A stretch of DNA of 64,000 bases. Source: Rebecca billardiae RCC1528 (lineage: Eukaryota > Protista > Haptophyta). Each line of letters opens with the position of its first letter. The first letter of the stretch is position 1. The stretch is taken from the NCBI GenBank assembly GCA_965240325.2, contig OZ251224.1:2852001-2916000 (forward strand). Direction: 5' to 3'. Positions 10,792 through 17,098 of this stretch are shown here, piece after piece. Both the position numbers and the translations under genes were made by a program. Under the pieces are notes generated by a model. That model made no database searches. It was given only the letters and a program-made list of their open reading frames with translations, and had not been told where the DNA came from.

Positions 10792-11559
10792 TCAGAGCAG
10801 AGCTTGCTCGGCAAACGCATCTGGGCTGACGACCACCTCAGTGCGCCACCCTGTCAGCCTCACCCACGCATCCGAGGAAAATCCATCGCCACCGACTCCG
10901 CAGGCCGGGCTCAAGTCGTCAAGCTCCACGTACGCACCAAACGCCGCCCTTACGGCCGGCACGTCCGCCTCTTTGAAGCCCGTGAGTGCCACTCGGCCGA
11001 ATGGTTGGATGCGTGCCGCAGCGTCGAGTGCGATGCAGCACAGAGGCCCAGGCAGCATATTGGCGACGAGAATATCAGCCATCGGGCGCGGCGCGAGCGA
11101 GGAGGACAGATGCTCGTAGACGCTGCAATGCGCCTCGACGCCATTCGCGCGCGCATTGGCCCGCGCCCACTCCACTGCCGAGGGCGTGATGTCCGCCATG
11201 ACGGCGCGGGTGCAGGCGCCGAGCCGGACTGCAGCGATTCCAAGCACGCCGGAGCCACACCCATAATCCAAGCAGACGGCGTCATTCGACGCGTCAAGCG
11301 TGTCCAGCCACTCTAGCAGCGTGCGCGTCGTCTGATGTAGGTTGCCCGCAGACGTCACCAGGAATGTGTAGTCGTCTGCGTCCAGTCGAACCTCCACAGC
11401 TCCGGCGGGCTTTGCGACGCTTGCCGGCAACGATGCCGGCGCGACCCAGACGCGGCCACACTGGACAGGGTCGAATGTCGCACGCGCCGTCACACTCGCG
11501 ACGGAGGTCGTGACGAGGGCCGTAAGCAGGGCAGGTCTCTTGGGAATAACGGGCGCCAT
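10792..11559 (-). CDS. Class I SAM-dependent methyltransferase, PrmA (ribosomal protein L11 methyltransferase)-like
   Basis: HQTT, LDYGCGSGVLGIAAVRLGA, DI..SAVEWARANARANGV, DILVANML and ALTGF motifs. Hydrophobic Ser/Thr-rich N-terminus suggests a targeting peptide. Confidence 0.75.
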   Translation of the reverse strand: MAPVIPKRPALLTALVTTSVASVTARATFDPVQCGRVWVAPASLPASVAKPAGAVEVRLDADDYTFLVTSAGNLHQTTRTLLEWLDTLDASNDAVCLDYGCGSGVLGIAAVRLGACTRAVMADITPSAVEWARANARANGVEAHCSVYEHLSSSLAPRPMADILVANMLPGPLCCIALDAAARIQPFGRVALTGFKEADVPAVRAAFGAYVELDDLSPACGVGGDGFSSDAWVRLTGWRTEVVVSPDAFAEQALL

Positions 11560-11782: not shown

Positions 11783-12150
11783 TCGAACGCCCCAGCCGGC
11801 AAGGTGCGCTGCTAAGCCTGATGAGCACAAGCTGGCCGGCATGGTCATTGGTCGAGGCCGCGAGGGGTACAGTTTATTACTAAGAATAATGACGCACACT
11901 GAGCTCAGGCAGGCGAGATTGACGCCCTCTACTACTGTCACCGCCCATAACTCATTGTCATAAGCTTCGAACGCCCCAGCCGGCAAGGTGCGCTGCTAAG
12001 CCTGATGAGCACAAGCTGGCCGGCATGGTCATTGGTCGAGGCCGCGAGGGGTACAGTTTATTACTAAGAATAATGACGCACACTGAGCTCAGGCAGGCGA
12101 GATTGACGCCCTCTACTACTGTCACCGCCCATAACTCATTGTCATAAGCT
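11783..12150. repeat. Apparently perfect tandem duplication, 2 x 184 bp
   Basis: 11783-11966 repeats as 11967-12150 (TCGAACGCCCC...GTCATAAGCT). Confidence 0.95.
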
Positions 12151-12687: not shown

Positions 12688-15600
12688 TCAATGATGGTGC
12701 TCATTCGCCTGGCGGTGGTAGCGGTGCACCTCGACGAGGAGCGAGCTCAGCTCGCCGCGCTCGAGCTCAATCTGCCGCCGCCGACCGGCACGCACGCACG
12801 TGCAGGCGAGGGCGCGTGGCGCGCGGCGCCGGGGCTTCCGTCAGCGCGCCGCGCGGTGGCGGCGCGCGCCCGGCGCGTTCGCGCGGCGCTGCTCGCACCT
12901 GGACACCGAGGTAGTGGCGCGCGAGCCCGTCTTGCGCGATGCACGGGTGCATCGAGAGGAGGTTCCAGAAGCCGCGCCCGTCTGCGCGCGCGGTGTCGCA
13001 GGGCGCGGTCGCAGGGCAGTCGGTGAGCCGCGCCCAGGCCGGTGCCTACGCGAGCACGGCGCGCCGCCATAGCGAGGCGCGCGCCGTGCGCGCCGTGCGC
13101 GTGCGCGTACGCTGGGTCTGGTTGAAGATCTGCACGCGGCACGGCCGCTTGGCCGCGATCGACCACTTGAGCAGCTGGATGGACGACGGGTCGGTGCACT
13201 CGGTCTGCAGGAAGCGGCAGTTGCGCCCGATGCAGTCCTCGGGCTTGTAACCGCAGATGTCCTGCGCGGCACGCGCGCGCACGCGTGGCACGCGCGCGCC
13301 GGGCGTGTGAGCAGGGTGCCCACGCGCGAATCGCGCGCGCCACGCGGCGTGCCGACCCGCCAGAGGCTCGCCCGCACGCTGCGCGCGCGCGGCTGTGCGC
13401 GTGCGTGTGCGCGGCTGTGCGTGTGTGTGCGTGTGTGCGTGTGTGCGTGTGCGCGGCTGTGCGCGTGCGCGTGCGCGGCTGTGCGTGTGTGTGCGTGTGT
13501 GCGTGTGTGCGTGTGCGCGGCTGTGCGCGTGCGCGCGCGCGTGCGCGCGCACGTAAAAGCCCTGGTTGACGTAGACGAGGGGCTGGTCGAGCTTGTGCAT
13601 GCTCGAGCAGCAGAAGGCGAAGCCGGAGCACTCGACGCACGAGCGGAGCAGGAGCTGCTCGGTGGTGGGCACCTTGAGCTCCTCCTTCGCCACGCTCGCC
13701 TCGTCCTGCTTGTCCGCGATGTCGACCACCTTGCTCACCTCGAGCGGCAGCAGGCCCATGTGCCGAGGCACGCCGAGCAGCCGCGGCTGGTGCACGTCGG
13801 CCGCGGCCTTCTTGCTCTCGAGCGTGGGCTGCCAGCGCGTGGCCGTGTCGGCGTGGACGGTGGGCGCCTCCGACGTGACCGACGTGTCCGAGCCGAGCCG
13901 GCCGTTCGCGCCGCCGTTTTCGCGCGTCGTCGTGCTCACCTTGTCGGCCGTGTTCGAGCCCTCGACGCCCGCAAAGTTGGTCTCGTCGTTGTGCACGGCG
14001 GCGACCTCGGCGGACATCTTGGGCTCCTCGACGACGATGTGCGACATGTCGAGGTTGGCGACGGTGTAGAGCTTGCCCTTCTCCAGCAGCTCGAGGAACC
14101 GCTGGTCACGCCGGTACGCGCGGAGCAGGTGCTTCGAGTTCACCATCGCGTGCTCCTCGTCCGGATCGGACGCGATCGCCTCGGCCGACTCTGCGAGCGA
14201 GAGCTGCGCGCGCGCCTTCCACGCCTCGCGCAGGCTGGTGGTGCAGAGCACGGGCGAGATGGCGCAGAGGTTGACGAAGGGGGTGCCGTCCTTGCGGTGG
14301 TGCACGATCAGCACGCGCGTCGGCTTGTCCGAGACGAACGCGCGCATCAGCTGCGAGCCCGCGACCATCGACGTGTGCGGCCCGTGCAGCAGACGGATGC
14401 CGTGCTGCGACTCGTACACCTCCTCCCGCGTGTATCCCGACATGCGCTCGAAGGCGAGGTTGGCGTAGAGCACCTGCGGCGGGTCGGCGGAGCCGTCGAT
14501 GAGGGTGAAGCCGTCGCCGCACGCCGCGTCGAAGAGCTGCAGCGCCACGTCGCGCGGCACCGGCCCCGCCGACGGCGGCGGCAGCTCGCGCACGAGGCGC
14601 GGCACCGGGTGGTAGCGCGTCGCGCGCGCAATCTGCGAGCGGAGCGCGACCTCGTCGTAGAAGACCATGTGCTTGGTGATCAGCCCGTCCTCGAGGCGCT
14701 CGATGGTGACGCCGGAGCACTCGACCGCCTGCGACGTGGGCAGCAGCACGAGCGGCGCGCCGTCGTAGTCGATCGCGCGGTACTCGCCCGTGTGGGTCGC
14801 CTTCCACTCCCAGTGCGTGATGATCTGCTCGCCGTCGTCTGAGACATCCTGCGCGACCTTGGTGTGCTTCAGGTCGGGGAAGGCGTCGAGGAAGCGCTTG
14901 CGCCGCGCGAGGAAGAGCTCGAGGCCGGAGAGGCTGCTCTTCGGCGCGTCGTCGTCGCCCGACGTCACCGCCAGCGCCGCCTTGATCCCCGACTCCTCGA
15001 AGACGAGGTCGGGCGAGAGAAGCTTCTTGAGCTCGGCGTCCGACACCTTGCCGCCGTACTCACCCTCGATGCGCTTCAGGACGACGCCCTTGTTGAGCTC
15101 GTGCATCGTGCGGTCCTGCACGTCGACGAAGAGGCGGATGCCGTCGAGCGACGTGCCCGCCGCCGCGGCGGCGTTGCCCACCACGTCGATCCGCAGCCGC
15201 AGGTACACCATCTCGTCCTCGTCGGCGGCGGGGCCAGACGGCGCGGCGGCGGTCGGGTCGGCCGTCGCGCGGTCGGGGTACACGCGCAGCAGGACCTCGC
15301 CCGTCGACTTGCCGAAGGTGCCCGAGGTGTACTGCGCGCTGCCGCCGCGGCGGCCGCGCGTCGACTGCCGCCGCGCCGTCGTGGCCACGTGCAGCCCGCC
15401 CTCCGACGTCGCCTGCGTCGCCTTGTCCGCCGCGGCCTGGATGGTTTTGATGAGCTCCGGAACGTCATCCGGGTGCCACACCGGCAGCGACTGCAGCTCG
15501 CGCCCGACGATGGCGGAGGAGAAGCCGAGCGAGTCGTAGCCGAGCATCTGCTCGACGACGACCGAGGCCTTCGACACCGTGCCGCTCGTCGTGAGCTCGA

Positions 15601-17098
15601 GCGTCATGCCGCTCATCTCGAGCGTGCGGCCGGGCGCGGGCGTGGCGAGCTCCTGAGACTTAGTGCTCTTCGACTTGCCCGGCGTCGCGACAAACTGGCG
15701 GAAGCCCTTCTCGAGCTGCTGGAAGCCCTGCTTGGAGGCGCCGCCGAGGTCGTCCTTCTTGTTGGTCGACGCCGACTTGTGCGAGTCGCCGTCGCCCGGC
15801 ACGAACGGCGCGGGCATCGCCTTCGCCTCGAGCGCCTCCCAGTCGATCCCTTTGAAGAATGGGTGCGCCTTCACGCGCTGCAGCCCGCCGAGCGAGCCGC
15901 CGAGCCGCATCTTGGGGTCGACGGTGAGGAAGGCGGAGATGAGCGAGGCGAGCTCGGGCGAGAGCCAGCGCGGCGACTTGTAGTCCGCCACCGCGATCTT
16001 CGACGTGAGCCGCTGCAGGTCGTCGTCCGAGAAGGGCGGCGCGCCGACGGCCATCTCATACACGAGGCAGCCGACCGCCCACCAGTCGACCGCGCGCGTG
16101 TACGGCTTGCCCGCGAGCGTCTCGGGCGCCATGTACACGGGCGTGCCGCAGATCGTCTTGGTCGTGTACGGGTCCTTGTCCCCGCCCAGCGCCGCCGCGG
16201 CCGACTCGGAGCCCTCCGTCACCAGCCGCTTCGCGAGCCCGAAGTCGGTGAGCATCAGGTGGCCGTCGAGCGCCACCATCACGTTCTCCGGCTTGAGGTC
16301 GCGGTAGACGATGCCCTTCTCGTGCACGTGCGCGATGGCCAGCGACATCTCGGCGGCGAAGATCCGCACCCAGTCCTCCGACAGCCGCCGGCGCTGCTCG
16401 ATCAGCGAGAACATGTCGCCGCCGCCCGCGTAGTCGAGGATCATGTAGAGCGAATCCTCGTCCTGAAACGCGTAGTGCAGCGAGACGATGAAGGGGTGGT
16501 GCATCGCCTGCAGCAGGTCGTTCTCCGCGATGGCCTGCGTGATCGACGCGTTCCCCTTCAGCACGATGTGCCGCTTGTCCACCACCTGCGGGCCGCCGTG
16601 GGCGCGCGCGCGCAGAGGCGGTCGGCAGGGCGGGCGCGGCGGCGCGCGCGTCACGCGCGCGCTCGGCGAGGGCGAGCCCAGCGCCCGGCACGGCGGCGTG
16701 CGCCGGGCGCCGGCGTGTGGGCAGGCGACCACCCTCGTGTGTGACGCACGCCCCCATCGCACCGCCGGCCGGACGGCGGGCACGCTGCCCGACGACCACC
16801 AGACGCGTCCCCGCGCAAAAAGCGAGCAGTGCGCGCGCACCTTCATGGCGTAAATCTCGCCGTCGACGGCGGAGCGGACCATGAGCACGCGGCCGTACGC
16901 GCCAGAGCCGCACACACCGAGCACCTTGAAGTCATCGCGGCTAGGCCCCTCCCCCTCACCGTCCGCGCCGCCAGACATGGCCGCGACTGCGCTGGATGAA
17001 GGCTCCTGGCCCTGCGTCGCCCCAGGCTCCGTGGGCCGTCGGAGGGCAGACGCCGCGAGAAGTGACGCACATACGAGGGACCTGAAACGAAGACTCAT
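12688..17098 (-). CDS. AGC-family Ser/Thr kinase fused to PAS, SnoaL-like, Cys-less LOV-like and canonical LOV domains (about 1202 aa, 5 exons); putative blue-light receptor kinase
   Basis: Exons 17098-16841, 16585-13553, 13261-13111, 12981-12899 and 12771-12688, all GT-AG. Kinase motifs [49 protein letters not shown] motifs [17 protein letters not shown]. Alternative start ATG at 16978. Confidence 0.9.
13380..13550. repeat. Intronic (GT/GC)-rich simple repeat
   Basis: GCGTGTGTGC/GCGGCTGT units inside the 291 nt intron 13262-13552. Confidence 0.8.

Follow-up and report, generated by a model that had tools for sequence, protein, structure and literature searches.

A candidate blue-light-regulated Ser/Thr kinase from Rebecca billardiae with an N-terminal AGC-type kinase, a SnoaL domain, and a C-terminal LOV domain

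To our knowledge, no light-regulated Ser/Thr kinases based on LOV domains have been established other than the phototropins. Canonical phototropins, with two LOV domains followed by a kinase, belong to the green lineage, and phototropin-like transcripts have been reported from cryptophytes too. Other LOV proteins use other effectors, such as the bZIP domain of the aureochromes of stramenopiles and the histidine kinase of the LOV histidine kinases (LOV-HKs) of Brucella and Ostreococcus. Here, we analyzed a gene in a 64,000-nucleotide stretch of the haptophyte Rebecca billardiae RCC1528 (GenBank assembly GCA_965240325.2, contig OZ251224.1, positions 2,852,001 to 2,916,000), referred to below as the window and numbered from its first letter. 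The gene lies on the minus strand (17098..12688), and its product combines a reactive-Cys LOV domain and an AGC-group Ser/Thr kinase in one polypeptide, as phototropins do. The domain order is an AGC-type kinase, a family-specific region, a SnoaL domain, a Cys-less PAS domain, a linker of ~180 aa, and a canonical LOV domain with flanking helices. We consider it likely that the locus is a single genuine gene encoding a Ser/Thr kinase under blue-light control, and that its assembly was independent of phototropin.

The arrangement differs from those of the described systems in several ways. In phototropins the order is LOV1-LOV2-Jα-AGCVIII kinase, whereas here the kinase comes first (aa 57-330) and the sensor last, and in place of two LOV domains there is a single photoactive-type LOV, with the SnoaL and Cys-less PAS domains between it and the kinase. 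Aureochromes also place the sensor C-terminal to the effector, with the LOV domain between an N-terminal helix and Jα, but their effector is a bZIP domain, while the window protein has a kinase, no bZIP domain in Pfam, and ~700 residues with three further domains between effector and sensor. The Brucella and Ostreococcus LOV-HKs likewise couple a LOV domain to a phosphotransfer enzyme and contain a LOV-PAS tandem; however, they are histidine kinases with an N-terminal LOV, in contrast to a eukaryotic Ser/Thr kinase with a C-terminal one. PASK is also a PAS-regulated Ser/Thr kinase, but its PAS domain is N-terminal and it has no LOV.

An initial annotation of this DNA had stated that no named family with this order was known to it, and we found none, named or characterized, in the literature searched beyond one passing mention, a comparison that stopped short of the LOV-architecture catalogue of Glantz et al. 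2016. That mention, in a 2026 analysis of pole-to-pole metatranscriptomes, places "SnoaL (PF07366) + LOV" among previously uncharacterized combinations seen once or a few times (PMC13737086); its text names no kinase, domain order, or mechanism. These sequences very probably represent the same family as partial transcripts. Coesel et al. found no environmental contigs with both LOV and Pkinase domains (PMC8017926). As far as the literature searched extends, the proteins described here appear to form an unnamed, uncharacterized, and evolutionarily independent family of LOV kinases. The gene would indicate that LOV kinases were assembled a second time, independently, in a marine family, and it suggests a candidate blue-light kinase pathway for lineages so far known for other LOV effectors (aureochromes and helmchromes). 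It would also provide a natural system for asking if a kinase at the N-terminus can be controlled by a LOV at the C-terminus, ~700 residues away, and possibly a new optogenetic kinase scaffold.

Gene structure and conservation in marine plankton

Joining the five exons (Table 1) gives a 3609-nt coding sequence with no internal stops and a 1202-aa product, which agrees with the four GT-AG introns and about 1202 aa proposed in the initial annotation. All four introns begin with GT[GA]CG[CA]GC and end with GCAG. The mechanical open reading frame (ORF) at 13046..17098 (-) runs through introns 1 and 2, because both are stop-free multiples of three, and ends inside intron 3, so that exons 4 and 5 are missed, as had been noted at the outset. 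We found that junction 1, between YAMK and VVDK, is colinear with a protein of Pavlovales sp. CCMP2436 (P0195) and that junctions 2 to 4 align without gaps to the LOV domains of the family. In two Logan assemblies, L001 and L002, there is a homologous locus with 42-58% protein identity; its similarity to the window follows the exons one by one and does not extend into the window introns. In L001, exon 1 is matched from aa 46 onward (tblastn) and there is no conservation inside intron 1. The homologous locus has no intron 3, its reading frame passing uninterrupted across that junction, and it has introns that match window introns 2 and 4 in position, with a conserved last exon (the intron 4 site and the last exon being seen in L002). 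No synteny was found between the window and L001/L002, so we call the locus only a homologue. Comparison with homologues thus supports the four splice junctions as modeled.

The position of the start codon may differ from the one modeled. The homologous locus has a stop codon just upstream of the Met equivalent to M41 of the window protein, and the true start may therefore be M41 (ATG at 16978-16976) instead of 17098, in which case the first 40, unconserved residues are perhaps untranslated. We considered whether aa 1-40 might form a signal or transit peptide and dropped the idea, given the lack of conservation there and the probable start at M41.

The initial annotation implied that the gene was unique, and this did not hold up. 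An exhaustive HMMER search with aa 400-1097 of the window protein recovered 16 cluster representatives that have the SnoaL region in common, and the order kinase, SnoaL, LOV is present in at least 11 further lineages from marine metagenomes and metatranscriptomes. Among the longer members of these clusters, P0164 (1255 aa), P0170 (1103 aa), and P0162 (1034 aa) are complete Pkinase-SnoaL-PAS_9 proteins, the combination proposed as a check on the architecture. Each is encoded as an uninterrupted ORF with short UTR-like (untranslated-region-like) flanks on JGI contigs of 3.7-4.4 kb that were independently assembled from several samples. Because the window gene and the homologous locus have introns, these contigs look like spliced mRNAs. 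The partial members P0048, P0088, P0027, and P0124 include the kinase C-lobe, and in the genomic contigs L001, L009, L010/L011, and L012 a Pkinase ORF lies immediately upstream of a SnoaL ORF on the same strand; a TARA scaffold is among the genomic contigs. On sequence comparison, the gene is a member of a conserved family of marine protists, at least some of which would be haptophyte-type algae, since Pavlovales sp. CCMP2436 is the source of the nearest named relative.

Other searches returned less. A word-index search with the non-kinase half gave only one relative, and a search with the LOV region of P0164 gave nothing beyond bacterial PAS proteins and the P0164 cluster itself. When phototropins were sought among the PAS matches of the HMMER search, the ten that were scanned proved to be bacterial, either histidine kinases or GGDEF-EAL proteins. 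The ESM Atlas contained no large cluster with the kinase-SnoaL-LOV architecture, the PASK and phototropin clusters being the closest by features.

These comparisons bear on whether the gene could be an artefact, either a kinase gene and a SnoaL-PAS-LOV gene that seem joined because the frame between them happens to stay open in 70% GC DNA, or an unexpressed pseudogene. GC-rich DNA does yield long spurious ORFs, the opposite strand here has ORFs of 626 and 511 aa, and the case for expression in this genome is made by comparison. However, the same order occurs in uninterrupted ORFs on transcript-like contigs from three lineages and in several genomic contigs, conservation across the family is unbroken through the inter-domain regions as well, and the gene has neither frameshifts nor stops. 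In addition, exon 2 alone spans the kinase into the LOV domain, in support of one polypeptide. A two-gene or pseudogene origin is already largely refuted, and we regard it as very improbable.

Some features of the DNA itself were also seen at this locus. The GC content is ~70-74% and dips to 55-58% on either side of the gene. In six-frame ORF tracks, introns 1 and 2 are rendered as filler rich in Arg, Ala, His, and Thr, and intron 2 is mostly a GTGCGTGT / 64-bp repeat array (13380-13554).

Table 1. Exons, introns, and domains of the gene, in window positions
Feature	Positions	Strand	Description
Exon 1	17098-16841	(-)	aa 1-86; N-terminus not conserved, then kinase G-loop GSGAYG and AMK lysine
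Intron 1	16586..16840	(-)	255 nt, GT..AG, phase 0, multiple of three without stops
Exon 2	16585-13553	(-)	aa 87-1097; remaining kinase, PAS-like region, SnoaL, Cys-less PAS, linker, first helix and two strands of LOV
Intron 2	13262..13552	(-)	291 nt, phase 0, multiple of three without stops
Exon 3	13261-13111	(-)	aa 1098-1148 (H1148: first codon base only); LOV core with GRNCRFLQ, Cys1112 codon (13219-13217), and Asn1144
Intron 3	12982..13110	(-)	129 nt, phase 1
Exon 4	12981-12899	(-)	aa 1148-1175; final LOV strands with Asn1154 and Gln1175
Intron 4	12772..12898	(-)	127 nt, phase 0, located after GVQ
Exon 5	12771-12688	(-)	aa 1176-1202 and stop TGA (12690-12688); amphipathic C-terminal helix, Jα-like
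AGC-type Ser/Thr kinase domain	15854..16930	(-)	aa 57-330, interrupted by intron 1; Pfam Pkinase
First PAS-like region	15059..15610	(-)	aa 412-595, family-conserved; PAS-like N-terminal motif, predicted five-strand sheet; PAS identity unconfirmed
SnoaL/NTF2-like domain	14630..15034	(-)	aa 604-738; Pfam SnoaL
Cys-less LOV-like PAS domain	14216..14539	(-)	aa 769-876; Pfam PAS_9 4e-7

The kinase and its lack of AGCVIII hallmarks

The N-terminal kinase has the full set of catalytic motifs, including DFGLAK and APE, and exon 2 alone matches Pfam Pkinase at 1.5e-55. As the initial annotation had proposed, it is an S6K/RSK/Akt-like kinase with DFG: its top PDB matches are S6K1, Akt, RSK2, and PKA (~5e-60), and its top named database relatives are RSK, SGK, and RAC/Akt, with 38-46% identity. 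The nearest named relative is the Pavlovales protein P0195, a partial sequence with 57% identity. The activation segment (aa 200-241, ~16376-16501) is 42 aa long in the window protein and P0195, whereas the other family members and RSK have 28 aa; within it, a 14-aa insertion is common only to the window protein and P0195 and suggests that the window is of pavlovophyte-like origin. The AGC C-terminal tail opens in the typical way (HPFF..IDW), and at the hydrophobic-motif site FxxF[ST][FY] the sequence reads GFRQF, without a phospho-acceptor.

In a maximum-likelihood tree of kinase domains that sampled RSK, MSK, SGK, and Akt-like kinases and left out those of phototropins, the family forms one clade (100% support in the Shimodaira-Hasegawa-like approximate likelihood ratio test [SH-aLRT]), and the four sampled kinase types fall outside it. 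The tree also placed two unnamed fragments in this clade, and for the one that was checked, P0225, a SnoaL ORF lies downstream on its contig, as the tree predicted. On this evidence, the kinase-SnoaL-LOV fusion appears to have arisen once, defining its own AGC subgroup.

AGCVIII kinases, which include those of phototropins, have a DFDLS motif, an insertion of 36-118 aa between subdomains VII and VIII, an activation segment of 55-137 aa, and usually AEP (PMC3499706). In contrast, the family of the window protein has DFG instead of DFD, a segment of 28-42 aa, and no AEP; exclusion from AGCVIII is based on these motifs together with the clade apart from the sampled RSK, MSK, SGK, and Akt-like kinases. 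Independent assembly is supported because of the DFG motif, the short activation segment, and the reversed domain order. The initial proposal of an independently assembled kinase is supported to the extent of the family's own kinase clade, in a tree of RSK, MSK, SGK, and Akt-like kinases, and the absence of AGCVIII hallmarks.

The LOV domain and a proposed mechanism of light regulation

A single LOV domain of the photoactive type lies at aa ~1062-1175, with the motif GRNCRFLQ and the adduct-forming Cys1112. When exon 3 alone was compared with the PDB, all matches were photoactive LOVs, namely Brucella LOV-HK (2e-9, the best match), Chlamydomonas phototropin (CrPhot) LOV1 (2e-8), YtvA, and EL222. 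The family LOV core is nearest in sequence and fold to CrPhot LOV1: the uninterrupted core of the homologous locus matches it with an E of 1e-18, and a model of the P0170 LOV superimposes on it with a TM (template modeling) score of 0.93 and a root mean square deviation of 1.0. The residues of CrPhot LOV1 that we take to be the key ones, C57, R58, Q61, R74, N89, N99, and Q120, align to C1112, R1113, Q1116, K1129, N1144, N1154, and Q1175 of the window protein, so the adduct Cys, both flavin-binding Asn, and the signaling Gln are retained, as first described.

The AlphaFold model of the LOV region of the homologue P0170 comprises an N-terminal helix, the LOV core (predicted local distance difference test score [pLDDT] of ~90), and a C-terminal helix. 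With its flanking helices, this model matches the LOV of Phaeodactylum aureochrome 1a (PtAureo1a) with a TM of 0.82-0.86. The amphipathic helix encoded by exon 5 is kept in L002 and across the family and follows the last strand in the P0170 model, and a helix after the last LOV strand is also a feature of phototropin.

These features are consistent with a mechanism in which the LOV domain would bind flavin mononucleotide and blue light would drive formation of a Cys1112-flavin adduct. Via Gln1175 the change would reach the β-sheet, and this would be followed by release of the flanking helices. As in aureochromes, LOV-mediated dimerization would then be altered, or an intramolecular contact relieved, and the N-terminal kinase would be switched on, most likely via trans-autophosphorylation of the activation loop. 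Light-induced LOV dimerization or contact release is favored because the topology, with the sensor after the effector, is aureochrome-like, and this analogy suggests that a light-induced dimerization logic may be common to aureochrome and the window protein.

The sign of regulation could also be the opposite, with the dark LOV and PAS domains keeping an active kinase dimer that light dissociates or occludes. Natural and engineered LOV proteins can be switched in either direction by light, and with the order reversed, the phototropin rule of kinase repression by LOV2-Jα in darkness does not have to carry over; moreover, none of the LOV alignment, the model, and the structure matches fixes the sign. 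However, aureochrome, the closest topological analogue, gains effector function in light by dimerization, and proximity-driven trans-phosphorylation is the usual means of activation for such kinases. We therefore regard a light-inhibited kinase as rather unlikely.

Several observations weigh against a light-activated kinase. Whether light activates or inhibits the kinase, and what part dimerization plays, is argued by analogy only, and flavin binding, a photocycle, and light-dependent kinase activity are predictions from sequence. Expression and splicing in this genome are deduced by comparison with homologues. In the kinase, Pfam Pkinase_C was not detected and the AGC hydrophobic motif is degenerate. 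Among the indexed flavin-contact residues of the LOV domain there is one change, in which the phosphate-contacting Arg (R74 in CrPhot LOV1) is replaced by Lys1129, a conservative substitution. Finally, some family members have deviant LOVs: P0162 reads NRSCNRLQ, P0164 is without the terminal Gln, and P0156, P0160, and P0010 are without the second Asn. From these sequences, LOV photochemistry may not be universal across the family.

Some of the same observations would fit a protein that is no photoreceptor, in which the domain at the C-terminus is a PAS that senses flavin, redox state, or a ligand, or has no cofactor, and the whole is a PAS-regulated metabolic kinase like PASK. Individual LOV residues are lost in several family members, R74 is replaced by Lys, and the same protein holds a clearly non-photoactive second PAS and a SnoaL pocket of the small-molecule type. 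In contrast, the LOV of the window has a complete GRNCRFLQ with both Asn and the Gln, its PDB sequence matches are all photoactive LOVs, and Lys is a conservative substitute for the phosphate-binding Arg. We consider a non-photoreceptor quite improbable, and a blue-light-regulated kinase remains our preferred interpretation.

The SnoaL and PAS-like regions and the flanking DNA

Between the kinase and the LOV domain, we found the SnoaL and LOV-like PAS domains that had been assigned initially and could not substantiate the first PAS. SnoaL is recognized by Pfam at 6.9e-14 with 52.2 bits, above the gathering cut-off of 28.4. An AlphaFold model of aa 400-900 of the window protein has a mean pLDDT of 69, with ~90 within SnoaL, and in Foldseek the SnoaL model has a TM of 0.7-0.84 to SnoaL2/AclR/AknH and up to 0.93 to bacterial ester cyclases, in line with the α+β barrel fold of the superfamily. 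SnoaL is the best-conserved segment of the family; it was found in 19 of the 19 aligned members, and R647, R648, and the AFPD motif are invariant.

The PAS domain that follows SnoaL reads HGIRLLHG at the site of the LOV motif GRNCRFLQ, and Cys is absent from this position throughout the family. Its LOV-like character is borne out by comparison with the family LOV profile in hhalign (probability 91.7%, E 7.8e-7). In P0007 (3055 aa) and P0009 (4197 aa), which are multi-PAS/LOV arrays, 10 stretches each match this domain of the window protein.

In the region that the initial annotation called the first PAS (aa 412-595), an AF2 (AlphaFold) model has PAS-like topology, with a pLDDT of 70-90 in the strands. 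Pfam gave no PAS hit for this region of the window protein, only one of eight family members reaches PAS_9, at 0.075, and hhalign against the LOV profile gave a probability of 8.6%. A variable basic and Ser-rich insertion, which includes RRQS in the window protein, lies at aa 484-510 (~15315-15395); P0011, P0027, and P0008 have equivalent loops, that of P0011 being a very long Arg/Ser/Glu-rich version. Such Ser-rich insertions could be sites of basophilic (auto)phosphorylation.

SnoaL and the Cys-less PAS are probably scaffold or oligomerization modules, and SnoaL may also bind a ligand. CaMKII consists of a kinase, a regulatory segment, and an NTF2-like hub, and the window protein resembles it in having an N-terminal Ser/Thr kinase followed by an NTF2-superfamily domain; however, the window protein has no Pfam CaMKII_AD or CaM-binding segment, and its SnoaL is of the ester-cyclase type. 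A tentative extension, which we think rather unlikely, is that the protein is a multi-input hub, in which the SnoaL pocket binds a small molecule or oligomerizes the kinase in a CaMKII-like manner and the output integrates blue light with a metabolite or assembly state. SnoaL-PAS(-LOV) would then be a portable sensor cassette that is also carried by other effectors, and the structure matches include two bZIP-domain proteins and an Ectocarpus protein. Specifically, the SnoaL+PAS pair of the aa 400-900 model aligns to A0A7S4RGQ4 and A0A7S2XIU1 of the AlphaFold DB (both "BZIP domain-containing proteins") and also aligns structurally to the PAS fragment A0A7R9ZM03 and Ectocarpus D8LMT6. From these model alignments, the SnoaL-PAS cassette may also be joined to bZIP effectors.

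The lower-GC intergenic DNA directly 3' of the gene contains a perfect tandem duplication of 184 bp (11783-12150; 2.0 copies, 100% identity), which gives rise to duplicated small ORFs at 11841 and 12025. The downstream neighbor, an ORF of 255 aa at 10792-11559 (-), looks by eye like a class I methyltransferase, and its VCLDYGCGSGVLG resembles the glycine motif of Rossmann-type S-adenosylmethionine binding.

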